A stretch of DNA of 64,000 bases from Takakia lepidozioides. Taxonomy: Eukaryota > Plantae > Bryophyta. A program made the position numbers and the translations under genes. The notes below the pieces were generated by a model, which had not been told where the DNA came from, did not search any database, and worked only from the letters and a program-made list of their open reading frames with translations. The DNA is taken from contig CM060734.1 of NCBI GenBank assembly GCA_030704615.1, positions 40,982,001 to 41,046,000 of the forward strand, given 5' to 3'. This document shows, piece by piece, positions 1 through 56,200 of the stretch (the stretch's first letter is position 1; each line of letters opens with the position of its first letter).

Positions 1-1040
1 GGCTCCCCGCAATTGAAACACACTCCATCAAAGGTCGCCTTCTGTCCGCCATAAGTCGCTCCACCCGCTTTTCCTTTCGAAGCACCGGGTGCCGCCTTGA
101 CGTGTGAGGGACCTCCCTTCGATTTCCACGTGCCATTTTCGCCGCGTGGCCTATCCCACTTCTTTTCCGGTCGGGAGGAGTCACCTTCCCGCCGGGTCTT
201 CTTGTGGTTCAGCTCCGTACGGCCTTGTTTCTCACCCCTAGGGACATCCGAGAAACATTCAGCTCTCTCAATTGCCTCGTTCAAAGTCTTGGGTGGCTTC
301 TCCTCCAACTTCCGCCTAGCCCATGGGGCCAGTCCCGCCACAAAGTTGAAGACCATTTCTGGTTCTGCCATGTCCGCGACTTCGAGCAACAGCACATTGA
401 AAGCCTGGACATACCCCCGAATGTCATCTGTTTGCTTCAAATTCCTCATCTTGTCCCGGGCAAGCCAGGATGCGTTGAGGGGCACAAACTGTCTCTTCAT
501 CAATTCCTTGAACTCACTCCAGTTCAAGGTTTCCGGGCTTGGGCCTCGGTCGTGAAGGCGTTTCTGCCACCATTGTTGAGCATAGCCCCTCAAATAGGTG
601 GGAGCCACTTCCACCCGATCCTCGTCACTCAACTTGGCCGCCCGGAAGTACTGCTCTAGCTCCAGGAGCCAGGTGTTGAGTGCCTTCCGGTTTCGAACGC
701 CCTCGAAGGTGCCGGGTTCCTTAGGCTTCACCTTAAACTTTGCCTTGGTGGAAGTGGCATTAGCCGCCTTCAACACGTCTTTCAACGTCCCGCCAAACTG
801 CGCCAACAACCCTTCCCAAAAGGCTGCCGGCATGGGAGGCATCTCTTGGTTTGTCGGAGCTCTCAAAGATTCCTCGGGCTCCGACTCCTCGGATTCCTCC
901 CGCTCCTGAGCGGCCTCGTTTTCGGAAACATTAATCGCTTCCTCAAACGGCCGCCTCGGTGACACGTCGCCCCCATCGGGCTCACCGGGGTCATCATCTT
1001 TTGGGCCGTTCCGCTTTCGCTTCGGCTTGCCCGACCCCAT
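1..1040 (-). CDS. gag: Ty3/Gypsy Gag, uninterrupted, runs off the window's left edge
   Basis: Manual translation from ATG at 1040 gives 346 codons without a stop: ...KEPGTFEGVRNRKALNTWLLELEQYF...YLRGYAQQWW...WSEFKELMKRQF...LKQTDDIRGYVQAF...FVAGLAPW..., ending in the zinc-knuckle start CFNCGE. Missing from the ORF track because there is no stop in the window. Confidence 0.92.
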   Translation of the reverse strand, partial: MGSGKPKRKRNGPKDDDPGEPDGGDVSPRRPFEEAINVSENEAAQEREESEESEPEESLRAPTNQEMPPMPAAFWEGLLAQFGGTLKDVLKAANATSTKAKFKVKPKEPGTFEGVRNRKALNTWLLELEQYFRAAKLSDEDRVEVAPTYLRGYAQQWWQKRLHDRGPSPETLNWSEFKELMKRQFVPLNASWLARDKMRNLKQTDDIRGYVQAFNVLLLEVADMAEPEMVFNFVAGLAPWARRKLEEKPPKTLNEAIERAECFSDVPRGEKQGRTELNHKKTRREGDSSRPEKKWDRPRGENGTWKSKGGPSHVKAAPGASKGKAGGATYGGQKATFDGVCFNCGE

Positions 1041-21600: not shown

Positions 21601-22325
21601 TCTTCGACTGGTCCTCCGACTCTACATTGCTAGAATTCCATTTTATTTATGATTTCTTACTATGATTTTGTACTAAACTTCATAAAATATATACTAATGT
21701 ACATAAAATGTGCTATTCTAAATTATGATCCGAAAAAGTGATCGACAGGCTGCTCCACCCCTAGAGGTAAAGGCCATTTGCACAAAATCCATGAAATATA
21801 TAAAAAGCACTTGATGTATTCATCATAGTCTATCTGCAGCTACAATATGCCAACATCTGTCGATGTCTATTTGCTGACTTGCCCTCTTCTAGTGCTCCTA
21901 GGCTGACACACTCATTGAGAAAACAAGTAAAGGTGACAGTCTCAAGCATCTGAATCCCTTCCCTATCATTTGTTCAATAACCCAAAAGCCTCCCTACCAC
22001 ACTATACCATGCAATCATCGAATTCCATCAGACCACTTTTGGCTGTCATTGCATGTTGTTGAACACGTCACGTGTATCCTTCATGCCACTGTGGTTCCAA
22101 TGAACAACAGCACACGAGCGCTGCTGAGCTCGTGTGGGCACTATGCTAACTCATAAATCCAATGGATCGTCCTTCACGAATATTTCAGATTCCTAACTGA
22201 TGTGCGGACGCCTTCCATCCACATCAATTCGGTTTATATCCATCGGAAATGGAAAAAGTTAGTGGGTGGCAGAGAGCGGAGACGGCCATAGCCAGGAGCT
22301 TGCAGCTCTGCGTAGCACAGCAGCC

Positions 22326-25905: not shown

Positions 25906-27621
25906 GTAGTGTGGATCGGCAACCAGCTAGTCTAACCTAGAATAGTGGTTTGCGATCCAGTAGTTCTGCATGCAGTCAACCGTATAGCCACAGCCAGCAA
26001 TTTTCAAAAATTTGAGAGATCATACACCCTCTCAAGGTCTAAAACACTTGAGCTCTTGACTTGCACCTTCGCTGTTTATACGAAATGTCTACAGAGGACA
26101 GTAGTAGAAAGGCTTAAGACGAAGGCGCGATATACGAGGGGAACATACCAGTCCCAGAAGCCAACTTGGTCCTCGTACAAACACTACCATCAGCCCTATG
26201 GAAGTAGACCCCCCCTGGAAACTTTACGTACGTGAATGAGTGTGGTTCATGGGTTGAGATTTCCTCACTTGGGCAGAGTCTACTTCACAAACTCAGAGCA
26301 TAATTGAGTCTGTTCGAATTGAGACCCCCCCACACTCATTTAGCACCTACATGTTACATAGTCCACAGTGTAAAGCCGAAGCTGAAGAAGCATCTAGTTT
26401 TGAAGCTATGCATGAAGTTAATAGAGCCTAGAACCTGAGACTGGTCCTCCTCATTTCGTCATCTCAATCCACTCAGTCTGTTTTATGTCAGAACCTGACT
26501 TGTGATAAAGAGGGCTGCCTCATTAGAATACAGACAGATGTCTTGAATCTTCTTTGGTTGGAAGGAGAAACATGGTAAAATGAATGTATGGTGAGGAAGC
26601 TCGTTGTGGAGTCAATTGGTGGATTTGAGTGGATTCTTGTATAGCGCATGTATTGGTGGGCATATAGCCCATAGCTCACAACAACCAGACAAAGTGGTCT
26701 TGTCCCAGTCTTCCGATGACACTGCCCTTGGGGTGTCACAGACAAAGGAGGAGCAGTCAACGAGCATATCTTCCTCTCTTACAGAAGAAAACATGGGTTC
26801 ACTCTTGTTGAAATGGGAAGGCTTTTGGCTTGTTTGAGATCAGCAGCTCAGTCGGCTATTGACAACACTGGGAGTTATGCCAGCAATCAGCACATGCTTC
26901 TGTGGACACTAGCAATATCTCCAATCCTTGCATGGAAGGTTCACTGCTCTACAATTGTTTGGTACATGCTCCAAAATTTGGTCTCCAACCAATTGTGCTC
27001 TGTAGTGGGGGGAGTAGGTGGACTCTGTCCCAACCTTGAACTCCAACATGCACAAACCAATGTTTAAGTGTGAGGAAGTCTTGCAAATCCAGCGGCACTA
27101 ATAAACAACAGAATACCCCAGTACAATTACAATCACCAAGCAAACTTACTTGCCACCACCGTAGGATTGGATTTTGGTAGATCAAGGCCAGCTTTCGACA
27201 ACATTCATGCAAGTTAGTCAAGGGCTCCATCTAACGTAGCACCATGAGGCGTGTCCTTAAGATGCTGAACAAACTTGTGCACAAGGCTACCCCCCTAATC
27301 AAGCTCATTACAAATCGTATTCACTTTCATCTTCAAGCTTCAAAGAAGCTCCACCATCCACACCACAATTAGAAAAGCACTCTGATTTCCTTCCACTATC
27401 AGAGTCAAAATCCCCCCTTCACTCATTACCTGCTCCAGTTAAGTGCGATCATGGGCCGACTGTCCACCTCTGCTGGGTAGACTCTTGGCCCTTGGAAGGT
27501 TGATATGCCAGAGGAAATGCCCTCAACAGATATCGTTCTCAGGAAATGGTGGATGAATAAAATAGCTACGCAGATCAATAAATGAAGCAACACACGTGCA
27601 CCTTTCCAGAAAAACATTGTT

Positions 27622-28914
27622 TCACCAGTAATCCCCACAAGAACACACCCCATCTTTGAAGTGGTGAAAGCGATTAGCATCCCGCACAACAATTGCTCGG
27701 CCAACAATCTTGGAGATAAACTTCGTGGCGGTGTGGCAGTCACCACACACCTGAAGATTTTTTATGACAGGGAGAGGCGTCCCAGGGGCTGTGCTGATCA
27801 GCCCAAAACCAATGGCCAGCTTCTCACTGTGGTGGCAAAGAGAAAGTTCTTTTTGCTCCTCCCCCACATCATGCAATACAAAATGTGTGTCAGGTATATA
27901 CCCTGCCTCCTTCATCTGCCCAGACAACATTCTAAGCTCAGCATGGATTTCCTCAATTTTTGGATGCAATTTGTCATCTACAGCAAAGGTGTGCACCCTG
28001 GTGCCAACCTCTATGCTGCAGCGACCTTGCTCTTTTCTAACCCCTCTGACCTTCATCAGTTTTCTCACCTTTGCAGTATCGCCCCACCTGCCAGCTGAGG
28101 CATAGATGTTTGATAGCAACACATAAGTTGCGGCGTCATGTTCATCCCACTTGAGAATACATGTTGCCGCGCGTTCAGCCATCTCCACATTGCAATGAAT
28201 TCTGCAGGCACCAAGCAAGGCCCTCCACACCACAGCATTTGGTTTAATTGGCATTTTGTTAATGAAGTCCTCTGCCTCATCCAATTGCCCCGCACGGCCA
28301 AGAAGGTCCACCATGCAGCCGAAGTGCTCCACTCCTGGAGTAATGCCATGATCTTGACTCAGGGCTAAGTAGTATCTGCCTTCATCCACTAAGCCAGCAT
28401 GACTACATGCAGAGAGAGAACACATAAAGGTGATACTGTCTAGCTTCAATCCTTCCACTAACATTTCTTCCATTAGTTGCAGGGCCTCCATATCACAACC
28501 ATGCTGGGCATATCCTGCGATCATCACGTTCCACGACACCACATCTCGTTCAGCCATATTGTCGAACACTCCCTTTGCATCCTCAATGCTCCCGCCTTTG
28601 GCATACATGTCCACAAGGGTATTGTTCAGAATGACATCTGGTACAATTCCCGCTTTGATGATGTCACCATGGACCTCTTTTCCCTTTTCCAGGGCTGCCA
28701 GACTCGCACACGAATTGCAAACGCTAACAAACGTGATGTGGTTGGGCTTGACCCCTTCCCGCATCATTTGCTCATAGGTCTCCAAAGCCTCCATCCCACA
28801 CCTATGCTGCGCATATCCTGCAATCATAGCACTCCAAGACACCACATCTCGTTCAGCCATATTGTCGAACACTGCCTTTGCATCCTTGATGCTGCCACAT
28901 TTGGCATACATATC
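27622..28914 (-). pseudogene. 3' half of a PLS-class PPR-E-DYW RNA-editing factor gene, detached by inversion
   Basis: Open 429-aa frame: S-P-L-S-P2-L2-S2-E1-E2, then HHSEKLA, CGDCH, CSCGDYW; begins mid-S-motif at an L1 junction. Confidence 0.93.
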
Positions 28915-31050
28915 CTCACTGCCAGAGAAGGCTGGAGAATGGAAGCAACGACTTCGTCACGATTGACTCATACCTCACTGCGAAGCGTAATCTGGATGTT
29001 GTCAGCTGAATTGGAGAACTTCATGAGAATCTGTGCGGGTGTAAATTGGTCTATGAAGGGAGAGAAAATGACGGCTTACATTTTCCAGAAAACAAAGCAG
29101 AGGAGGGAGGCAACACAATCAGTTCTATATTACTTCGCTGCTCTTTTTCCATTGCCTCTTGAAGCTGGCTCTGAGGTCTCCAGGGCAGAGGTCCTTACAT
29201 CCTTTCCCTCTTTGTTATCTGCTGTAGATCAAGCGGCCTTATCCAAACCATTCCTAGATATGAAGCTGTTGCATGCAACTGAATAGTTCTATGAAGACCC
29301 CTGGTCTTGACGGGCTGCCAGTTGAGTTCTTCAAGGAAATGACGTGGGACTGTATTGACGACGACGACTTTCTTAAGATGGCTAATGACATCCTCCAGAA
29401 AGGGATGATGCCATCTCAGTTGTCGGAAGGAGTGATCACTCTGGTTTACAAAAAAGGCAATCGGAACAACCTGTCAAACTACAGGCCAATCACTTTGCTC
29501 AACTCTTCATACAAAATCTTGGCGAAATGTCTGGCTTTGCGGCTTCAACCTCTGCTGCCCAAGCTAATAAGAGCGGAGCAAACTGGTTTCCTCAGAAACA
29601 TGATGATCATTGACAACATTCTGCTCACACACGACGCCATGCACAAAACAAATCATGCTCAGCAACCATTAGCCCTGCTCATGCTTGACTTTCAGAAGTC
29701 CTTTGAGAATATAAATTGGAAGTATTTGTTGGGTGCACTGAAAACAACTGGTATTGTCGGCAGCTTCTTATCTTGGATTGATATCCTTCTCTCCTCTCCT
29801 TCTAGTAGAGTGATGATTAATGGTGCGATATCTAGAGCTTTTCCCTTTTTTAAATCAGTCAGACAAGGGTGCCCCATGGCCCTTTTCCTCTTTCTCATCG
29901 CGGCGGACGGCCTAGTTCACCTTATGGATAAAAGAAACAACTCTTTTGGCCTTGTTATCCCACACTCCTTGTCTTTGAACCCCTCCTCTTCTATTGATCC
30001 TCCCTCTATGCTAATGATACTACCTTGTATATAGACTATAGCTGAGCCACCAACGTCAACAACATTCTCCATCCCTGAACTGTTTCTGTGAAGCTAAATC
30101 TGGCTTAAAGATCAACTGGGGAAAGTCTGTTGGGCCGCTGCTTGTGGGGAGGACCTGGGTCTAAAATGGCTTGATGATGGCCAGATGCACGAGTCTTTAG
30201 GGCACCAGAGAGGTCACGGCCTTTCTGATGAATACCATTTTGCTGCTGTGCTCTCGAAAATTAAGATGAAGCTCACCTATTGGAGTTCCTTGCACCTGTA
30301 CTCTATATGGGGCAGGGCGTTGATTGCCAACCAGTCATCCTTGCCTCTTCCTAGTTCTCAGCTGCAGTCTGGTCTCCTGGTGCCCAATTCATCAAAAAGG
30401 TAAAGGCGATGGTGCGCAACTTTATGTGGGGGGCTACATCAAGATCTGCAAATAAGAGAGCATTGGTCAGTTGGGCGCAAATCTGTCAAAAGCGTAAGCA
30501 TGGAGGTCTTGGGGTCCTAGACCCTGAAACCCAAATTATTGCTTTATTGGCAAGGTGGGTGCCCAGGGTCTTCACCTGCCTGCAGAGTCCCTGGAGTAGG
30601 CTTGTTAGACACCATATTGCAGCAGCAATTCCAAAAACCAATGCCCTGTGGCCTTCTTCACTCAAATGGATTGTTCAAGGTGGTTCCATGAATGTTAACC
30701 CTGGCATGGGGTCCCAAGCATGGCAGACTATCTGGTCTGCATGGGGTAAGCTGCGGGGTTTCCTTGTTCAAACCATGTCCTCTTCCTTTAATGAAGTTAT
30801 CAGGCAACTGCTGTTTGGTAATTATAATCGTGAGTCTGAAGATCTTGTGTTTCGCTCTGGACAAAAGATGGTCTTACTGGGAGCAAGCAGGGCTGTCTCA
30901 TCTTATGCGCTTTTGGGATGTAAATGCACCAATCTTACCTGAGATGGCTGTTGTTGGCTTCTCCTCTAGAAGACTAGCCTTTGGACGGCAAACTATTATT
31001 GGGACTTTTGGCTCGGAGTGGAACCTCTCTCCTCTGCCTTATGGCTCTTG
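28915..31050 (+). mobile_element. L1-clade LINE ORF2, linker plus RT (3' half), degraded
   Basis: KTPGLDGLPVEFFK, NYRPITLLNSSYKILAK, EQTGF, LDFQKSF, SVRQGCP, YANDT in a shifted frame, KHGGLG. Confidence 0.92.
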
Positions 31051-31119
31051 TAAGATTTTTTTTTTTTCTTGTGCTTATTAACTAATACTCTTCTCGTATT
31101 CATGTTGTTGAATTGCTTA

Positions 31120-32430
31120 GTCTTCTTTTCTTCGCCGGCCCTAGTGTATACCAGCAGCACGGAAATACAGCTGCCGTACTTCCTCCACAGAATGAGGCAC
31201 AAAATTCAGACTCCTACGCTTTTCGTATAGCTCATGGCCGTACTTGGAGGAGACATTTTTGGGCCAAGGCTTCAAATTTGATGGGGTAGCTCATTTACAC
31301 TCGTTATCGACAGTATGGCGTATGGCGGTTGAGAGTCATTTTACCTTAGTACATCAAAACAGAGTGGGCACTTTAAGCCGATCTTTTTGCCCTCTTGATC
31401 CAGCCTTGTGTCACACTCGAAGTGCTTCTACTAATTTTGCATCATATTCATCTGGAGAATACCAAAAAATTTGATATTGCGAATCATTCATAGGTGACAG
31501 CCAAGGAAAGTTGCGATTGTCGACATGGTCTCGAGCTCTATATGCAACATGTAGTATTTTCATATAGCTAGGGAAGTTTTTTTTTTTTTTTTTTTTTTTT
31601 AAATAAAATTTATAATAATTATTAATAAAGAGAACAGGGGACAGTGGCCCTGGTTGGAATTTTATTAGAATTATTGAAGGGAAAAAAATTAAAACCCTTT
31701 GATGCCCGTAGGCTGCCATAAGTAGAAAACATTGTATTGGAAACATGTATTAGAAAATTGTGACTGTCAGCATTTCATACACCCTAGGTTTTGTCTTTTC
31801 TATTTTGTTTTTTGAAAATGGGATAGAGGCCCTGAAATTGAATGGTACAGAAACAGGTCTACCAGAAAGTTCAATAATCATACATGGGCGAACACAGCCG
31901 ACCAATGAGACCATTCTCACTCCATCACAACGTGACAAGAATTGTCCAGTCCTAGTCTTTGCAAGGTGACAAAGCTATCTCTGATGACGATGACATTCAT
32001 AGGGAGACCCAAGGAGACCCACGATGAGACACTTTGTTTGGCCAAATTGCTTGGCCTCCTTTTCTTCGGCGGCCCTAGTGTATCATGTATACCAGCAGCA
32101 TGGACGTACCTCTGCAGTACTTCCTCCACAGAACGAGGCACAAAATTCAGACCCCTAAGCTTTTCAGACAGCTCGTGGTCATACTTGGAGGAGTCATTTT
32201 TTGGGCCAAGGCTTCAAATTTGGTGGACGGCTAATTTACACCTGCTATCAACAGTATGGCGGTTCATAGCCACTTTACCTTTGATTACTTACATCAAAAC
32301 AGAACAGGCACTTAAGCCCATCTTTTTTGCCATGTTGATCTTTTAGCCTTGGGTACTCGAAGGTCTACAGATGCTTGTACTATTTTTCGCATCATATTCA
32401 TCTGGAGAATATCGAAAAATTCAATATGCT
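31120..32430. repeat. Two diverged ~370-bp direct copies (31120-31480, 32055-32430) of an unidentified sequence
   Basis: Shared blocks TACTTCCTCCACAGAA.GAGGCACAAAATTCAGAC, GGGCCAAGGCTTCAAATTTG and GCATCATATTCATCTGGAGAATA. Confidence 0.8.
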
Positions 32431-32856
32431 CCTTTGCGGGTGACGTGCACATAGTCCTTCCAATCTGGTCCACCCTTTCCTCCATGCTACAACCTCGAAT
32501 GGAAATGAAAACAAAATCTCACATGATACAAGGTCTATGCAGCGAGGTCTGCACAACAAGGTCTACACAACACGGTCCACTCACTGGGGTCTACAGGAGT
32601 GAGTCTACAACAGAAATGAGAATGCTACCAGCAATAAAGGATTGACTGCAACTCTTCCTCGGTCTCACTTGCAGCAGCATCAGTGAACCCGCAGATTGAA
32701 GACCTTGCCGAAGCAGCATGCTTGCCCATACCATCTTCTTGGGACAACAAGTTTCCCGTAGAGAGCAGCCTGCAGCTGCAATCGTGTCTTGTATCGGCGT
32801 TGCAAGAAGACGGACCCAAACATATCTCTCTGCCTCTTCCTCACTCACCGGCGGGG

Positions 32857-35800
32857 ATGGCAGCGTCTTCCCGCGTTCTCCTCACCGCCCACTCCATACC
32901 CAAGGTCCTGGCCACTTGCTTTGGTCATGTGGGAGGCCGGGAGTCATGCAGCGGATTGAGGAGCTGGGCTGTGGAGCTACCCCCCTTGGCAATGCGTAGA
33001 GGACGGAATTCCTTGCAGGTGGTTGCTATGGCTCCTCGCCAACCTTCAGGGATGCCATTCAAATTAGGCAATAACACGAAATAGTTTGCGGTTTCCTTTC
33101 TTGGGTTCGCTGTGAATTGTATGCGCAGTAGGAGCGAGGCTGGATTTTTGTTTTGAGCGATTAAGCAGAAAGGAATGTATTCTCAAAGAAAACACACGGG
33201 ATGGTTGGACAAGGCTGATAATTGGTATATGTGGCACGTAGGTGAACGCTGGTGCATGGAACACCGCTGGCAGGATTTCCTTAAAGATCCTTCACAATGT
33301 TGGGACTGCAGTATTGACAAGGTGAGCTTTCTTCATTTGGAGTCTGAGGGACTTCGACTGAACTCTGGTATAGTAATATTGTGTGGACTGGATTGGAACC
33401 CTAGTGGTGAGTGAAGTCAGAGGCAAAACTGCTTTTACTATCAGTATCTGGTATGAAAGTAGGATGTGCGAAGTCTTTTCCCCGGAGTTTGCAAGGTACT
33501 TGGGAGGATTGAGACTGTGGCTGCTCAGCTGCCCCTGGTCGTTTTCTCCGACCACTCCAAAATCTCCAGACTACAGACATAAGCAGCGCACACAAGAGGG
33601 CTTGTGGATTGATTGTTGGTTCAAGCCTTCTTGGGTGAAAGGAAAAGTAATTATCATGCCACAACGTCAAGAAGTCTGTTGATGGAGGAAAGATATCAGG
33701 TTGCTCTTCTGATTCTGGTCTAGATCGTGCAGCTCCTTCAAAGCTTGCAGATAAAAGTGAGTACGACTTACAGTGACCTGATAAGAGGGGCAGCCTTGTC
33801 ATTCACAAGCTTGTATAGCATTTGTGTAAGTTCGGACATGTCATATGTTCCTCATTGTGTATTCCAATGGAGCCCACAGTGACTTGCATGAATGTTGTTG
33901 AAAGCACTCCTCCTTAAAGGAATGTGTGTTGATGCTTTTGGAATTTTGGGCACGAAGGTCTACTGTGGAGCATGGAGCAGTGCTGGCACGAGTATTTTAA
34001 AGATCCGTCACAATGGTGGGACAACCACAATGGCAAGGTGTGGCTTTCTTAATATATGATGTGAAGATGCTTGTCCTTTCTGCAAAATTGGGCGCTTCCT
34101 GTCAGTATCGTGATTTTTTCTATTTCCTGGTGTTTACATGGTACTTGGGAGGGTCAGCTTGGTCTTAGGAGGCAGTGTTTGAATCTATGGCTGCTCAGAT
34201 GCACCGTGGTGGCTCTTACAGACAAATACGAGATCACCTGACTACAGACACAAGCAGCGCACACAAGAGTTCCTTTGGGTTGATGGTTGGGTGAATCCTC
34301 CTTGGGTGAAAGAAAAGCTAGTTGTTTTCATGACACAAGGTCAAAGACAATGTGGTGAGGGCACCTTCTTCAACACATTTGGGCCTTTTTTGTCCTCTTA
34401 TCAGAGTCATCCCTAAATTTTCAGGTTGATTCTGCAAGTTAGCTCGCCCGGTGGATCTATGGTGGTTTGGGGTGATTATGACATGTTACTGCCAATTTGG
34501 CAATAGGCAAATATCCAAAAACAGAAAGCAGAGACGAGGAGAAGCTTTGGAAGGAATATTTTTCGGAGCCCAGTCCATGGTGGGACAATGGAGGCAAAAA
34601 GGTAAATGCCTGTGAGAGAAGCAGACAACAAGATGCATTGCAAAGCTCGCTTGGAAATTGTAATCTCCTCTCTCTCCCCAGCACATTTTGAAAAACTTGG
34701 GAGCAATTCAGCATAGGAACTGTTGTGTGATAAGTAGAGTTGGGCTGTTTGCTAGAAAAAGTTAGGCGACTGCTAGCAGCAAGGGCAAAATCTATGCATT
34801 ATTGATGCCGAGGCTGGGATAGCTGAAGGAGGCAGGGATGGAGTGTGGGTCCAGATTCATCCGAGAGGACCGGATTTCAAGCGCGAGAGTACCTATGATT
34901 CCCTGTGGATTGTTAGCAACAACAAACCTGCATTGGCAGATGGTCAATGGAAGCAGCAGAAGCGACACAGTTGATAAAGTCAGGCACCTCCACCCTGACC
35001 ACAGCTTCCGGACAAGGACCAAGAGGGGGAGCCCACAATACCTCTTCTGGCACTTCTGGGCGTGTGAGGATGCCGTGTGAGGCAGGGCAACTGAAAGAGG
35101 CTGTACAGATTTTGAACCAAGGAGGCTTTTCAGCAGATTCAGATACTTATGTGTGTCTCTTGCATAAGTGCATCATGATGAAAGGCCTGGAAGCTGGAAA
35201 GCAGGTGCACTGTCACATTATCCAAAGTGGATTCAAGCCAAATGTACTTCTCCACAACACCCTTGTCAACATGTATCTTCAATGTGGGAGCATTGTGGAT
35301 GCACACCAAGTGTTCAATGAAAAGCCTGAACGAGGTTTGATCTCGTGTAATATAATGATGGCAAGAATCGGTGTGGTAAGAATGCTTTGGAGACATGTGA
35401 GCAAATGATGCAGGAAGGTGTGAAGCCCAACCACATCACGTTTGCTTGCGTTTGCAATGCGTGTGCAAGACTGGGAGCCCTGGAAAAGGGCAAAGAGGTC
35501 CACGCTGACATCATCAAAGCTGGAATTGTACCAGATGTTATTCTCAACACTGCCCTTGTGGACATGTATGCCAAATGCTGCAGCATCAAAGATGCCAAGG
35601 GAGTGTTTGACAATATGGCTGAACAAAATGTGGTGTCCTGGAGTGCTATGATTGCAGGATATGCGCAGCATGCGTGGGGGATGGAGGCTTTAGAGACCTA
35701 TGAGCAAATGATGTGGGAAGGGGTGAAGCCCAACCACATCACTTTTGCTTGCGTTTGCAATGCATGTGGGAGCCTGGAAGCCCTGGAAAAGGGCAAAGAG

Positions 35801-36160
35801 GTCCATGGTGACATCATCAAAGCTGGAATTGTACCAGATGTCATTCTCAACACTGCCCTCGTGGACATGTATGCCAAAGGCGGGAGCATCGAGGATGCAA
35901 AGGGAGTGTTTGACAATATGGCTAAACGAACTGTGGTGTCGTGGAATGCGATGATCGCAGGATATGTGCAGCATGGGTGCGGGATGGAGGCTTTGGAGAC
36001 CTATCAGCAAATGATGTGGGAAGGGATGAAGCCCAACCAGGCCACGTTTGTTTTTGTTTGCAATGCGTGTGGGAGCCTGGCAGCCCTGGAAAAGGGCAAA
36101 GAGGTCCATGGTGACATCATCAAAGCTGGAATTGTACCAGATGTCATTCTGAACACTGCC
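32857..36160 (+). pseudogene. 5' half of the PPR-DYW gene: transit peptide, 3 OSB-type PDF motifs, PLS repeats
   Basis: Approximate exons 32857-33018, 33169-33321, 33551-33665, ~33930-34037, 34221-34338, ~34425-34601, 34855-36160. Three W..(Y/F)F..PS.WWD...K | ...PD(Y/F)(R/K)...LW units, then L-S-P repeats. Lesions: CCG instead of CAG acceptor at 33550; frameshifts near 34946 and 35365. Confidence 0.82.
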
Positions 36161-39100
36161 CCATGCATTTGGTCAGAGCCTTTTGTCACCGAGTCCTTTC
36201 CATAGCCAAAGCCCTAGAGAGAACTTGAGCCTTCTTCCTCGTGGCCATTACTTTGTGCATGAAGGAAGCAGTTGGAGATCGGAAGTCATTCCCTGTCTCC
36301 ATCCAGACCTGCTTCAGAGATTGGAGGTAATCAACATTCTTCAATATCGCAGGGTTGAGCTTAAAGTATCCCCTACCTCTGGAATGGGTGCCTGGTGGAG
36401 TGAAAGAGATCGCAACTTTTGCATGGTCAAAGTCCGGAAGGATTGGACCTTGGGGGAGACATTTGGACCAGGATATGGGATAATGAGAGCAGTGTACTCT
36501 AGCCTGACCATGCTGAGATTAGGAGGGAGACGTAAATTGGACCAAATGTACTTCAGCTTTTCTTCAGAGACCGAGAAAGCATCAACTAACCCTACTGAGA
36601 AGCAGAGCATGTCCCTTGCTATCTGCTCCGAGTCTGAGAGGAACTAAGTAGAGTGAGCCATACGGTCATTAAATTTATCGACCATATTAAAATCTCCATC
36701 CATAACCCAATTGGTGACATGAGGGAGATTGATAACCTTTTCACAGATGAGGTCCCATAATTCTACTCCTTCCGAGGAAGAATTCGGAGCGTAGATATTG
36801 AGGAACGCCATGTGACCAAAGCTGGATTCAGGAACAGTGAATAGGCATTGAACATGGCCCTGCACCCAAATATGAATTTCATGGATGGACGGAGCCAGGG
36901 CAGGTGAAGCAAGAATTGTTGTACCTCCTCGAGACGAAGAGACAGTTGGATTCCACCAGCATTGGTTTGGAGGCCAGAAGGAGCTGCTAGCAAAGTTGAT
37001 TTTGAGGATGTCTAGTTTGGTTTCTTGGGGGAAAATGATGACCGGGGAGGAAGAAAGGGAGGAGGCCCAACGCTTGATCCTTCTGCATTTTGGTACAGAG
37101 GCATTAGGGCCTATACCTCGTACATTCCAGGAGTGAAGTGACCAAGTCATGTAGGAAACAGTGAGCAGCCCATGTTAAGTCCATGATTTGATGGCTGAAG
37201 GGTAGTTCTGCACCAATGTTGCAAATAGAAGGAAAGCCACAAGGAGAAGAAGCACCGATGAGGTGCCTTGGTCCATGTAACAGGTGGAGGCTGAACCAAA
37301 TTAGAGATATAGTTCCGCAAGGCTTTTCCAGGCCAAATCTGACAATTTTGTAGGAAGAGCAACGGAATTGAGGGCCTGCAGGTCCAGCAGGTGGAGAGGG
37401 GAGATTGAAGCTTGATGGCAGCTTCGATGTATTCAGAGAGGAAGAAGCAGCCAGGGGAAGTGTTCAGTTGATAGTGAACATCGTCTTCACTTCGAGGGAA
37501 GACACTAGGAGTCAGCTCCCTACCCTCAGCCAAGGAAACCCCAGTCAGAATGACAGGTCCACGTAAGCAAGAGGAAGAAACATAGCTCACCAGGGAAGGT
37601 ATAGAGATGTCGTTATCCGAAAGAGTGAAGATCTGGTCCTCGGATGGCCCTTCAGACTCGCTTCTTGGGTGTCTTTCATAATAGAGAATTTGCTTCACTA
37701 TGAGCATGCCCACATTGTAAACCGCCTCCATGAAAAATTCCTTATCCCTTGAGAGCGGGGAGCAGCTCAATTGAGAATTTTCCAGATGTGCATCTATGCA
37801 AGAAAGAGCCAAAGTCGATAGGTATTGACTGAGATAAAGGAAGATGAGGGAGGAGGGAGATGAAGATACTCTGGACCTTGGAGAGGATGATATCCATCTC
37901 CTTTCCAGGAGAGAGAGAAAGGTCTTCTGGGAAAAACCAGGAACCCGCAAATGAGTTACTACCGGTTGCTATGAGGGCAGCAACAATTGCTCCTCCAGGA
38001 AAACCATAGACCACAGGCGTGACATGGATAGCCACTAGGAGGGGTCCATCAGGAGAGAAGTCATCTGGTATCCCCAAACATCTGAAAGAATTAAGCCTAC
38101 TGCAAAAAGCCGCCAAGTTATCCGGGGCCCCCTCTGCAAGCTGAAAAAGAACCGCCTCCGCTCTTGATCTATCAATGAGCTGATTGACAGGAGAAATCAG
38201 TACTTTGGGACTGAGGATACGGGAAGAGGGAGTAGATAAACCCTTGCTTTCTTTGGAGGAGGCACGATGCCTCATCCCGAAGCCGCTCTTGAGGAATCAT
38301 CTGTCTGTTCTCCCTGGCAACAACAACAGCTGGATGCTAGACAGCAGGCACATCAAGGGGAAGGGAGTTAGCAATCTTCACATTTTTGTTTTTGGGGCAA
38401 TCTGCTTTTGCGTGTCCCTCCTTATGACACAAGTGACACAGAATGCTTAAAGATTCTCCTCGAAGACCGAAATCGTGATGAATGCATTATCTAGAGTTGG
38501 TAGCTTCAACGATTCCGTGATTTTTGCAGTTTCAGCCATCCACACCACGATCTTGGGAATCCTAGAGTCCCAGGTAGGATCATGGTGTCCATCAGTCAAT
38601 GCTAAGTAGGTCTGCATCCTCAAAATCATCAACATTCATAGTCCAAATGAATGCTCCAAAATGCGCTCCTATTTCAAGCAGGGAGCGGAGATAATTCGCA
38701 GGAAGATAGGGCAGGGCGATTGTTCTGCGTTTGCAGGTACCCCCCATTTTGTGCCCCCACTCCGTTGACCAAGGGAAGATGTGGCCCCTGCATCTAGATC
38801 TTCTGACGTTAAACCTCAAGGCTTTAGCAGCATAGTCATTTCGAGCGAAAGAAGAAACCCCTTCCCAAGGGGTGGCAGAAGTGAGGGTGCCCCTCCATCC
38901 GCTCCAAGATGCTCTATAGTCCCTATTCTGGCCCAGTGCCTCTATCTCACCCTACCCGGGAAGTGCAAAAGAATTCCTTGCTCTCCGAGCTTTTGGGAGT
39001 GCTCTTTTAACACGTTCATATCCAACTTGAGGATTGGTTGGTCCTCAGATGAGTTTGCAGCTACTTCACTCCAGTATTTAGCAAGTCTACCCGGCGGAGA

Positions 39101-40097: not shown

Positions 40098-41802
40098 GCT
40101 ACGCCATGAGCCGCTCACATCAGCAGGCTCACGCTTTGTACACAAAGTGTGAGCAGATTTGATTAAACGTGAGCAGATTTAAATCGTGATCAGAAATGAG
40201 AAACAGAGCTTATAACCGTGGGAGAACATGGGCCATACTACCGTGGATGCAAAGTGAAGTGAAATACTTCTGGAAGAGTGGACAAATGTTGCACTTGGAA
40301 GGCAACAGAATTAAGCTTATTTCAAAGCAAGCATAATTCAGATATGAGATATGGTGGACTCGGAAGTGCCTCAAACAGATAAATGCAAAACTGGGAAGTG
40401 CCTGTACCTGGAATTAATTCAGAGCAAGCCAATGCAAAACTTGGACGTGGTCAGAATTTGGAATGCTTTAAAGCAAGCATAGTTCAGACCGCATAAACGC
40501 AAAACTTGCAAGTGGCCAAAACATTGTAATCTACAAAGCAAGCATAATTCTCATAAGACATATGATGGACTTGGAAGGAACGTTTCCTCAAAACCCAAAC
40601 TTATAACTAAGATCTTTAGACAGGAAACAGAGCACATGTAATGAAGTATATATTATCCCACTGCCTTGAAAACAGTACATGAACGGCTTCATAGACTGGG
40701 TGAGCTATCCCGCTCCAAAAGTCTAACCACCTCACTGTAACCACAACCTTAACCGCAAGCTTAATTCCCAGCATGTTTCTCTACACGACCAAGCCAGTTT
40801 GCTAGGGTTCAATTTTTTTGTTTTTTTGTTTTTTTGTTTAATTCCCATGTAAACAGGGACTAGGATCAAGCTTGCGTCAACATAAGCTTTATTTATTTAT
40901 TGTTTTAACTCAGTTTTTTTTTAAATATTTTTTTCTGAATTCCCATGTGCCAACAGGGGCTGAGATTAAGCTTGCGTCAACGCAAGCTTAACTCAATTTG
41001 TTTTGTTTTTTTTTGGGAATTCCCATGTGCCAACCGGGGCTAGATCAAACTTCAGCGCAAGCTTAATTCAGTTTTGTTTTTTGTTTTTGTTTTGTTTTTA
41101 AAATTTCCATGTGCCAATAGGGGCTGGGATCAAGCTTGCGTCAACGCAAGCTTACCTCAGTTTTTTTTTTTAATTTAAATTTAAATTTTTAATTTGAATT
41201 CCCATGTGCCAACAAGGGCTCAGAATAAGCTTGCGTGAACACAAGCTTAATTCCCTACATGTATCCCTGCACGAACAAGGAAGATTCATAACTGGGGCTT
41301 AGTTTTCTTTTCTCGAATTTCCGTATGCCAATCATAAGCTTAACCACCTCACTGTAACCACCTCACATCGCAGCTTAAAGAGATGAGGAGAAGATCACAT
41401 CGCGAAGTTAGGGATCTGTTGCGACATAAATGAAAAATATCTTTCATTCATTTATGGATGGAAAGGTAGGCGATCAGGATGGACTTCATCTGGCATTTCG
41501 CATTTTCGTGCAAATCCAAGATGTTCATCAGTGATCATGCAGAGAAGACGTCATCTTTCATTCATCCATGCTTCAATAATCATGCAAGCTTTCAACATAT
41601 ATTCATCCAACATTCAAACTATTTGAGTTCCAAAACATTAGGGGCTACTGCCCATATTTCCACAACTTCAGTTCGCAGTAATAGGCCTTCGTAGGCATTG
41701 CCATCCGCGGTTATAGGCCCCATGCAGTCGACGTCATCCTGAACCGTGAGCAGGATTCTGCTCACGGAAATTTCCGCTCACGTGAGCGGCTCACGGACTA
41801 GC
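40098..41802. mobile_element. Non-autonomous TIR element with internal repeat arrays, superfamily unclear
   Basis: Left gctacgccatgagccgctcac vs right (reverse complement) gctagtccgtgagccgctcac; GTGAGC subterminal repeats; no TSD found. Confidence 0.65.
40750..41345. repeat. ~5 units of 80-100 bp, each with the palindrome AAGCTTGCGT-CA-ACGCAAGCTT and a T-rich spacer
   Basis: AATTCCCATGT..GGGCT..AAGCTTGCGTCAAC units near 40840, 40938, 41018, 41102 and 41198. Confidence 0.85.
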
Positions 41803-51588: not shown

Positions 51589-53246
51589 CTAGGAAGAAAC
51601 TTTCAGGGAGGCTAGTGCATCAATTTCTTGCTTCATAATCAGGCCATCGATGAAAACATCCAGGCCCTCCCCTTCCATGATGTGCTCAATTGAATGCTGG
51701 GTGATACCCACCCTATGGTCAGTCACCCTGCCTTGTGGATAATTGTACGTACGGATTCGCTCTGATCGGTCCCCGCTACCAATCTTGACCATCCAGACAG
51801 ACACAAGTGGCAGAAATGGGTCAGATTAAGGATAAAGCAATTGCTCTTCACCAGGTCACTCCATGTAACCAAGACCCCTAAGACAGTGATCCCTACGTCA
51901 GTGTTCTATGTAAAACCTCACCATCTAACACATGCCGAGTAGGTCTGAAGAAACAACTCACAAGTTCTTAACAGCATAGGGGATTTGATAAACAACAGCT
52001 TGTTAGATTTAGGTAGGCAAGTAATAATCTGATACATTTACAGACGTCGCAAAGCACCAAGGACAGAAAATCTGGGCCGAGAAAAGTGAAGACAAAGACT
52101 AAGACAAACAATGGCACAGCTCTAAAGCAGCACCCTCACCTGCTCCTGTCGCAGCTCAGAGCGCATTGTGGCTTGCCTGCACCTCTCTTTCTCATACAGC
52201 TTTGCTCGCAGTATTTTGAGAGCTTTTGCTCTGTTCTGAAGATGAAGGTCATCCAAAACATGAGGAATTTTTTAATGGTCCCTGAACTGTTCAATACTCA
52301 GGTATCTTCAACCAAGTACAGCGAATTCCTTCCCACTTAGACCAACATGCTGGCAAAGGGTGGGCGCACTCCCATGTGGAGCACCTGTGCCAGTTTTTCA
52401 CATCATCATGGATCTGACAAGCTTGTCATCTGCACGGGATCTGGGCAGCTCTCATGACTGAGCTCTCACCCCCCATATAAACCTCAGTCAAAACCTACAA
52501 GAAAACGACACTTAATCAGGAAAGGAGGATGTACCTGATGTTGGGACCGCTCATCTTGAATGGCAATCACAATGCCTGTCGGAAGGTGGGTAATACGCAC
52601 CGCACTGCTGGTGGTGTTAGCATGCTGGCCCCCAGCCCCACCAGCGCGGTATGTGTCCACTCTCATGTCCTCATTTCTGAGTTGAACATCGACCTGCATA
52701 AATTCTGCTGTTATCTTCCCTGTATTTAACTCTCTCTCTCTCTCTCTCTCTACCCACTCTCAGCACTAGACTGAAATTTAAACTCAGGGCGGGAAACCTA
52801 CCTTTGAACAACAAACAGAAGCAGAGAGGAAAGGGAGAGTGCAATTGCCCATTGTGTGGGCAACCTGAAGACAATATTCATTTCCTGATTCATTGTCTGG
52901 GGTTCTCTCACCAGAGAGATGCTCTCTTCGAATCCATCAATGGACTTGTGCCTGTACATCTGTTTACCAACTTTGAAAGTCTCGAGGCTGAGCCAAAAGC
53001 CCAGGCCCTTTTGGGGCCTAGTTATTGGGCAAACCACACACAGCAGGTTGATGCTTGTGTAAAGGGATGTGTAGATATCTAGACATTTAGGGATATCTGG
53101 AAAATCCGGATCAATTGTTTATTCCAAGGTAAGTCTTACTGCCGGCATCAGCCCCTGACAAAGGTAGGTTCCGTCCTTTGTGTTCCGCTCAAACTGGGCA
53201 CGGGGTCAATGGCCACAAGGCTACGGCAAACAACGTCCTGTGAGTG

Positions 53247-53282
<36 letters not shown>

Positions 53283-56200
53283 AACAGGACCGCCCTGTCA
53301 AACAGGCTAAGTCCTGGCAGAAGAGAGTAGAAGAGATCCTCAAGGACCTGGACCTGGATCCGCAAGTCTCGACCCTGCTGGATAAATCTGACTTAGAGGC
53401 TGTAGTGTCCTCAGCCATGTCTGTTGCCATGAGATTGTCTGATGAAAATGAAGTTAGGCAGAAAACTTCCCTGAACTTGTTTCCAGTCTGTGACATGGGG
53501 GAGGACATCTTGGATGACCTCAAGGGTCTACCCACTCTCGGCACTAGACTGAAATTTAAACTCAGGGCAGGAAGCCTACCTTTGAACAGCAAACAGAAGC
53601 AGAGAGGAAAGGGAGAGTGCAATTGCCCGTTGTGTGGGCAATCTGAAGACAGTATTCATTTTCTGATACACTGTCCGGGGTTCTCTCACCAAAGAGACGC
53701 TCTCTTCAAATCTATTAAGGGAATTGTGCCTGTACCCCTGTTTACCAACTTTGAAAGTCTCGAGGCTGAGCCAAAAGCCCAGGCCCTCCTGAGGCCTAGT
53801 TTTTGGGCAAATCACACACAGCAGATTGATGCTTGTGTGAAGGGATTTCTAGAGGATATCTGGAAAACCTGGATTAATTCTTTATATGGAGGTAAGTCTT
53901 ACTACCAACGTCAGCCCCTGACAGAGGTAGGTTCTGTCCCTTTTGTTCCCCGCTCAAACTGGGCGCGGGGTCAATGGCCCACAAGGCTACGGCAAACAAC
54001 GTCTTATGAGTACAATCTCTCTCTGTGAGCTTATCAAGCATGGTGGCGACCCCATCATAGAGGCCTTTGTACTTCTCTTTATCTTATCTGGAGGACTGAA
54101 ATGATCCCCTTTCGCTGGCGACAGGGGGTTATTGTCAATCTACACAAGAAAGGTCACAGAGAAGAGCCAGGGAACTATTGAGGCATCACGCTTCTCAATG
54201 CAGTTGAGAAGATATCTTGCAGAGTTATAAGTATTCGTCTCGAGGTTGATCTGGAGTCTAGGGTTGTTTCCATGAAGGCAAAGATGGCTTCCAGCGAGAC
54301 AGGAGCTGCGTGTATCATATCTTCATTCTAAGCCAGATTATGCAGGGAAGGAAAAAAGAAGGGAAACCCACTTTTGCCTTTTTCTTGGACATCAAAAGGG
54401 CTTATCGCAGTGTGGAGACATGGTCTATGGCTCGATATCATTTCACTAGTGGTTGTGGATTCAAACCCACATAAGTGTGTTGGATGTAAGGGAGTGCATA
54501 CCAGACCCATTCTCGTAAAGCCCTCCCTTTACATTGTAGTTTTATCCATGGACTTTAAATACCAAAAGGATCATAAAGGTGTTCACATTCCCATCAGAAG
54601 GCAGTAGTCCTTGGGGGTCAAGTGACACCATAAGTTGCGCTTGCTTCGGCAAGATCCACATTTTTTTATTATATTATATTTTTGTTTCTCTCTCTCTCTC
54701 TCTCCTCTCTCTGGAGTTTCTTGTTGTTATACTTATTCAATGGGCAAGCTTTTTGTGCAGACCTCATCAGCTTGAGGAAGGACGGCTACAGAGGCTGCAC
54801 TTGTGTGAACACGCCCACTCTTCTCTGTCACTGGAACCCGCTGTGCACCAGGATGTAGCTATGTCAGTTCCAGAAACCACTGAGAAACAGATTGCCAAAG
54901 TAGCCACTCAGAACATAACCTGTGTAAGAGATCCAATAATCAAGGAGTTGATTTTTCTCTCCCACCAGATTGCACCCACACCCAAACTTTACTTGAGACG
55001 TCCAATAAGGGACTACACCTGGACACGGTGCACACCGCTCTCAAACTTGAGCTTGCCATAAACACCCTCTCCAGTAATTGAAGCACTTGCTTCCTGCATC
55101 ACCTCACATAAACCCCTTTGAGTTGCACACCAACATACTGCTACTTGCTCGATGCTCTCCAGTCTCCAGACAGCATTGAAAGGCATGAAAAAGGAAAAGA
55201 TCAGAAGCCTAATTCATTCTGCATGTTCAAAGAGTAGAAAGGTGGGGAGACATACCTTGTACCCACGCATATCTGTCTCTGTAATGGCCATCATGTCAAA
55301 TCTCCAAAAATTCCTTTGTGCGAAACGTTCATACCTGCGCTGACCCGGACACCCACTTGGATGTCACTATCTGTGGTTTCCAAATCAGAACCACCATTCC
55401 GCAACCAGTAATACCCTTGCGAGAGCCATAATTTGGTACCCAGCAAATTCCAATGGTACCATTCCATTGCTATTGGCATGAAGGACTATTATTCCTTTCT
55501 AAGGAGGGGTAGAGAGGCTAGGCGAGCATACATTCTAAAAATGTCCATCGCAAACAATGATGCCTCTTCCCCACCTGTGCCTGGTACATGAAACAAGAGG
55601 ATATGTGAGAATTACAAGTCCAGAGCTCTAGCTGATAGAGCAAAGACCACAAAACCTCATGCATCCAAGCTACACTAACCAGGGCCTTAAGGCTTTTGCA
55701 GGCCTACAAAATAGAGGCGTACTTCTCTTTTCTTTGACAATATTTTAAAACCTCTATATTTTTGGTAGTAACTACTTGCAGCCCAGAACAATGTGCAACA
55801 GAACAAGCGGAAAAGGAAACCGTACCAGCCCTGACCTCCAGGATGCAGCCCCGGTTATCAGCTTCGTCTTTAGGAAGCATTAGAGACAGCATGCGGTGCT
55901 GCCACTGAACCTCTTCCTTTGTGGTTGATTGCAATTCGTCAGCTGCCATGTGTCGCATTTCATCATCCTCTAGTGATTCATCCAACAGAATCTTCAACCC
56001 CTCTTTTTCCTGGGCAAGATCAATAGGTCATCTTAGAACCCTTGGATCACTTGACACCTAAACGGTGCTCTGATGTGTGCTTGACTTTGTTGCTTCTGAG
56101 TCTAGATAAATCACCTGCTTTATACAATGGACACCAATTCATTGAATTGTTCTGCTGTGCAACAGCTTGACTGGAAGCATGAATGGACACGGTACCTTTC

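Follow-up and report, generated by a model that had tools for sequence, protein, structure and literature searches.

Split Gene and Split LINE at the Locus

A stretch of 64,000 nucleotides from the genome of Takakia lepidozioides (assembly GCA_030704615.1, contig CM060734.1, positions 40,982,001 to 41,046,000 of the forward strand) was analyzed; this whole stretch is referred to below as the window, and positions are counted from its first nucleotide. The window contains a pentatricopeptide repeat (PPR) gene of the PPR-DYW type and a long interspersed nuclear element (LINE) of the L1 type. Both are present as two halves located on opposite strands, and the two PPR halves and the two L1 halves break at the same two breakpoints. 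The segment enclosed by the breakpoints (28915–36160, 7,246 bp) has an orientation opposite to that of both flanks. Flipping it in silico restores the PPR array and the order of the L1 open reading frame 2 (ORF2), and the flanking module copies described at the end of this work then become direct.

Each of the two junctions connects PPR sequence with L1 sequence. At junction J1 (28914..28915), the antisense start of the PPR 3' half abuts the sense L1 half with the linker and reverse transcriptase (RT). At junction J2 (36160..36161), the sense end of the PPR 5' half abuts the antisense L1 endonuclease half. A first-pass annotation, made from the letters of the sequence alone, had placed the junctions at 28914/28915 and 36160/36161, and these positions proved to be exact. 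The four ends that it had read there were also recovered. The PPR 5' half on the plus strand ends with NTA at 36160, and the 3' half on the minus strand starts with DMYAK at 28914; the L1 endonuclease half (minus strand) ends at 36161, and the RT half (plus strand) starts at 28915, as seen with a custom profile and the RVT_1 model.

PPR-DYW Gene

The 3' half of the PPR gene (27622..28914, minus strand) begins at 28914 with the residues D-M-Y-A-K, includes two PLS units followed by E, E+, and DYW, and ends with the C-terminal DYW and a stop codon at 27622. It is an intact open reading frame (ORF) of 429 aa, the longest in the window, with its ATG at 28911, 3 bp from the junction. According to the Pfam analysis, this half contains repeats of PPR families, the E motif (E_motif, E-value 4e-18), E+, and the DYW deaminase domain (DYW_deaminase, E-value 7e-42). 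The zinc-binding motifs of the DYW domain (HSE, CxDCH, and terminal DYW) are all visible.

The 5' half (34947..36160, plus strand) includes the N-terminus and PLS units, starting with an ATG at 34947 and ending with N-T-A at 36160. Near position 35364, it carries a frame-shifting deficit of 10 bp (50 nt vs. 60 nt in sister units), a further lesion that arose independently of the split. A single uninterrupted PPR frame was thus not found, the frame being split at 36160/28914 and shifted by the deficit near 35364.

Taken as one gene, the two halves have the architecture of a PPR-DYW editing factor, with PLS repeats, E, E+, and a DYW deaminase with its zinc-binding motifs. The gene resembles the PLS-class PPR-DYW organellar RNA-editing factors of early-diverging land plants in all these parts, including HSE/CxDCH and the terminal DYW. 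Unlike those factors, this copy is split and frameshifted, its tandem units are unusually similar, and its best identity with other proteins is 56–68%. In protein word searches, the closest natural proteins, from Diphasiastrum, Ginkgo, and Sphagnum, were 56–62% identical, and the match with 68% identity was a synthetic construct.

The tandem PLS units have a period of 303 bp and are 88–90% identical at the DNA level. They extend over positions 35384..36160 of the plus strand up to J2, and the array resumes at 28914–28484 on the minus strand. As assembled, the Tandem Repeats Finder (TRF) program reports an array of 2.6 copies with a 303-bp period that ends at 36161. After the flip, TRF reports one 303-bp array of 4.0 copies with 87% matches, from −776 to +431 around the join. 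The PPR phase across the join agrees to within 2 of 101 residues. In addition, an alternation of two unit types, the K-type (C-x-S-I-K...S-W-S) and the E-type (G-G-S-I-E...S-W-N), is kept across the join; over the first 120 nt, identity is 89% within a type and 82–87% between types. As a separate observation, it is unusual for an editing factor that acts at a specific site to have RNA-recognition units that are nearly identical.

After the flip, the unit-to-unit spacing is 303, 297, and 303 bp, with the deficit of 6 bp located exactly at the join. The absent 6 bp correspond to the Leu-Val codons that are present at three sister unit boundaries. Since no other indel occurs among the three near-identical PPR units, the 6-bp loss is attributed to the breakage event rather than to a native oddity of the gene. 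The first-pass annotation had stated that the PPR gene rejoins in frame with only Leu-Val missing. This is correct for the 6 bp at the join, but the deficit holds modulo whole 303-bp units, the loss of which would be invisible here, and the 10-bp frameshift exists besides.

Two minor points concern the same gene. A short PPR-like fragment is located at 21869–22144 (minus strand) and shows 29–38% protein identity to the PPR 3' half. Transduction of the PPR sequence by the 3' end of an L1 was also considered and rejected, since the 1.2 kb that follow the PPR stop codon contain no poly(A).

L1 Element

For the analysis of the L1 element, a custom ORF2 profile of roughly 1250 positions was built from 40 full-length L1 ORF2 homologues. 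Four of these 40 homologues were scanned and displayed the Exo_endo_phos / RVT_1 / zf-RVT architecture of plant L1 ORF2. The half located at 36161..37150 (minus strand) contains the endonuclease and the first part of the linker; it corresponds to profile positions 16–345 and has two stop codons and one frame change. The half located at 28915..30828 (plus strand) contains the rest of the linker, the RT, and the region after it; it corresponds to profile positions ~345–972 and has one stop codon and three frame changes. Thus, the decay of the two halves is similar.

The endonuclease half matched the custom profile with 44.2 bits (3.5e-15) over positions 16–229, with additional matches of 27–34 bits. 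Pfam analysis of the endonuclease ORFs found nothing even at an E-value of 1, and the domain is visible only with the custom profile. As for the RT half, it was recognized by Pfam as RVT_1 (E-value 2e-20), and it matched positions 486–972 of the custom profile over 29285–30828 of the window (486–831 at 307 bits and 825–972 at 54–58 bits).

The succession of an N-terminal AP-type endonuclease and a reverse transcriptase is that of an L1-type LINE. The C-terminal zf-RVT domain is absent, the profile match ending at position 972 (30828 in the window). Neither a 3' poly(A) nor target-site duplications were found for this copy (no A-run of at least 8 nt and no flank match longer than 11 bp). The L1 copy is old and 3'-truncated or decayed. 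There are no other endonuclease or RT pieces of this L1 in the window.

After the flip, the profile matches run in order on one strand: 16–229, 220–368, 378–408, 486–831, and 825–972, of which the run 220–368 crosses the join. As assembled, the profile alignment of the endonuclease half ends at position 345, three residues beyond the join. The start of the RT half extrapolates to approximately position 343 (its first independent match is position 378 at +105 nt). The halves therefore meet at ~343–345 with neither overlap nor gap. The full-length homologue P0014 aligns through the join without gaps and matches the residues on its far side. The true continuation scored 39.8 bits vs. 32.6 ± 1.35 bits for 1000 random continuations taken from the window, and only 2 of the 1000 reached the true score. 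The in-frame rejoining of the L1 upon flipping, as proposed from the first reading, is borne out by these comparisons.

Upstream of ORF2, a CCHC zinc knuckle (38397..38438, minus strand) was noted as a possible remnant of L1 ORF1; this is a pattern match only, and Pfam analysis of the neighbouring ORFs gave no match.

Sequences at the Junctions

The sequences on the two sides of J1 are unrelated, as are those on the two sides of J2, and the microhomology at each junction does not exceed 1 bp. No inverted match of at least 7 bases was found within 40 bp of the junctions, no homology spanning either breakpoint was found, and there is no extra inserted sequence at J1 or J2. An ORF at 28477–29286 runs across J1 and includes L1 sequence. 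Both halves of each split element are exactly complementary to each other at the two junctions.

The first-pass annotation had stated that no inverted repeats flank the breakpoints. Nothing homologous spans them indeed, but inverted PPR units occur nearby: the units at 28484–28918 and 35557–36161 are 88–90% identical in inverted orientation over 300–435 bp, near both junctions. Both inverted copies are located to the left of their respective junctions. These copies could not have caused the flip, since before the event they belonged to a single array as direct repeats.

In addition, the 7-mer CACTGCC occurs at both ends of the segment (28917–28923 and 36154–36160) in direct orientation. When pairs of sites were drawn at random from the window, 2.3% of them shared a 7-mer match within 10 nt. 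At the L1 join, CACTGCC encodes residues that align without gaps with the homologue's own residues. Its presence at both segment ends is probably due to chance, and the copy at the L1 join probably belongs to the L1 itself.

Proposed Origin of the Inverted Segment

The arrangement is probably the result of a simple reciprocal inversion of 28915–36160 through two double-strand breaks repaired by non-homologous end joining (NHEJ). Two features characteristic of a two-break inversion were found, namely, reciprocal novel junctions and colinearity of every split feature after the flip. End joining, in turn, is consistent with the microhomology of no more than 1 bp, the loss of 6 bp where the PPR halves meet, and the gapless L1 join. 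Since the sequences meeting at the junctions are unrelated, the microhomology is at most 1 bp, and there is no nearby inverted match, end joining of two breaks appears to be the best mechanism. This agrees with the first reading of the locus, in which end joining had been preferred to ectopic recombination.

In the ancestral order, read on the present minus strand, the old decayed L1 would have been followed by ~4 kb that contained, among other sequence, PDF-like modules and then by the PPR-DYW gene, with the L1, the intervening modules, and the gene all in the same orientation. The first break would have occurred in the linker of L1 ORF2, between the endonuclease and the RT, and the second one at a boundary between units of the PPR gene. 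The intervening 7.2-kb piece would then have been religated in the reversed orientation, with no detectable loss at the L1 join and with 6 bp lost at the PPR join.

Two-break inversions in plants are known as natural, radiation-induced, or CRISPR/Cas-induced events. The Takakia segment resembles plant inversions formed by NHEJ in its reciprocal junctions between unrelated sequences and in its size in the kb range, as well as in having one seamless-looking join and one join with a small deletion (PMC7474074). In induced two-break inversions of Arabidopsis, 10 of 14 junctions had no sequence loss and the rest had 1–2-bp or small indels; inversions of 3–18 kb were also reported in that work (PMC7474074). 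Unlike the induced Arabidopsis inversions, the breaks in Takakia would be spontaneous, and the event is deduced from one assembly only.

Several observations weigh against an inversion of this kind. When the exact products of three ORFs were looked up, namely the 429-aa ORF and those crossing J1 and J2, no record was returned. No uninverted allele was present among the protein word-search matches, the closest of which were only 56–68% identical. Neither a poly(A) nor a target-site duplication is present to show that the two ends of the L1 belong to one insertion. Finally, the L1 join is located in the poorly conserved linker, where losses of a few bases are possible.

Alternative Explanations

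A fault of assembly or scaffolding would produce the same picture if the 7.2-kb piece had been placed correctly and oriented wrongly, with the joins closed without Ns, the organism itself being uninverted. Both breakpoints are located in repeated sequence (the tandem PPR array and the LINE), in which assemblies tend to break, but the 64-kb window contains no N, and an overlap-based assembler has no reason to connect unrelated sequences. Moreover, an exact computational flip would not delete 6 bp, and the sole indel among the PPR units is located exactly at the join. If the assembly is a long-read one, single reads would presumably cover the 7.2-kb piece. Such a fault is considered rather unlikely, and the event presumably took place in the organism. 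It could also be supposed that there was no inversion, and that four truncated fragments, two from different PPR sequences and two from different L1 elements, abut by chance. Small PPR-like and RT-like pieces do exist elsewhere in the window. However, this would need four fragment ends that are pairwise complementary at the same two points, a PPR phase that agrees to within 2 of 101 residues with the higher-order unit pattern kept, and L1 halves that meet at ~343–345 of roughly 1250 profile positions with no overlap. The joint chance was roughly estimated to be well below 1 in 1000, and this explanation is extremely improbable.

If the inversion is real, it might have arisen by another route, such as template switching by fork stalling and template switching (FoSTeS) or microhomology-mediated break-induced replication (MMBIR), polymerase-theta joining with filler, or excision followed by reinsertion. 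The CACTGCC present at both segment ends could then be templated filler or the microhomology of an intermediate. However, chance is an adequate explanation of the 7-mer given its frequency among random site pairs and the freedom of the search, and its gapless alignment with the homologue makes it probable that the 7-mer was part of the L1 from the start. Neither junction has usable terminal microhomology or an extra insert, and these routes are clearly improbable. As for a flip by non-allelic homologous recombination (NAHR) between inverted repeats, by L1 twin priming, or by transposase-mediated alternative transposition, it is hardly credible. The inverted PPR–PPR similarity near both junctions (300–435 bp, 88–90%) would favor NAHR, and the segment is like NAHR inversions in being flipped and in having repeats near its breakpoints. 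Unlike in those inversions, no repeat spans the breakpoints here; the similar PPR units were direct before the event and are on the same side of each junction, and NAHR was rejected. Twin priming could be suspected since an L1 takes part. In this process (Ostertag and Kazazian 2001), the inversion is confined to the L1 sequence of a single insertion (PMC10760644). Like in a twin-primed L1, the 5' and 3' parts of the element face opposite directions. Unlike in a twin-primed L1, the flipped piece also holds ~4 kb of non-L1 DNA and half of a host gene, the reciprocal junction is located in that gene, and the L1 was already old, so twin priming was rejected. A single insertion consisting entirely of L1, with target-site duplications and a poly(A), was not found at the locus. 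Alternative transposition was rejected because the breakpoints are in the middle of the ORF2 linker and inside a PPR unit, with no transposon terminus.

Age and Consequences of the Rearrangement

Among the PPR units, dN/dS is 0.24–0.42 at dS of 0.20–0.28; therefore, the PPR gene would have remained under constraint until recently, over most of the period that followed its internal duplications. No stop codon is present in the ~2.5 kb of PPR coding sequence, and one stop is expected per 1% of neutral divergence. The loss of constraint would therefore correspond to less than about 3% of divergence. The L1, for its part, has accumulated three stops and at least four frame changes in 855 aligned codons. 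Judging from these sequence comparisons, the loss of constraint on the PPR gene is much younger than the L1, and the inversion would be recent relative to that element.

With the frame split and shifted, the full-length PPR editing factor is predicted to be destroyed and the gene to be dead as a full-length gene. The intact 429-aa PPR-DYW ORF might, with low probability, still be expressed as a short editing factor. For annotation, the PPR fragments are best recorded as one split pseudogene and the LINE fragments as one split element, instead of as four features, and the PPR gene is best left out of any count of functional editing factors. By itself, the rearrangement is a routine structural change, an ordinary break-and-rejoin event of a known kind with no functional system behind it, and no function is proposed for it. 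Its value is that of a clean, base-resolved example of a small inversion.

Flanking Modules and Other Features of the Window

Three split PDF-like motif modules are located upstream of the PPR start (33222..34910, plus strand). Each of them consists of a W-W-D-N box, a spacer of ~170–250 bp, and a P-D-F/Y-(K/R)-H-K box. A partial copy of such a module (27191..27401, minus strand) is located ~220 bp downstream of the PPR stop codon. It is a 230-bp copy of the sequence at 33680–33905 on the opposite strand, and the two become direct after the flip. The PPR ORF thus seems to be seated inside the array of PDF-like modules and not simply fused to it.

Direct repeats of ~370 bp (31111–31477 and 32045–32427; 78% identical) surround a T24 run at 31577–31600. 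These repeats, spanning 31111–32427, are located just past the truncated 3' end of the L1, and they may represent a small nested retroelement or a pair of long terminal repeats. At 53180–54247 (plus strand), beside an ORF of 282 aa, the L1 ORF2 profile gave weak RT-like matches, which probably belong to another retroelement. In addition, a T-rich tandem repeat (40928–41171) with 2–3 copies of 80–84-bp units is located upstream of the L1 5' region.

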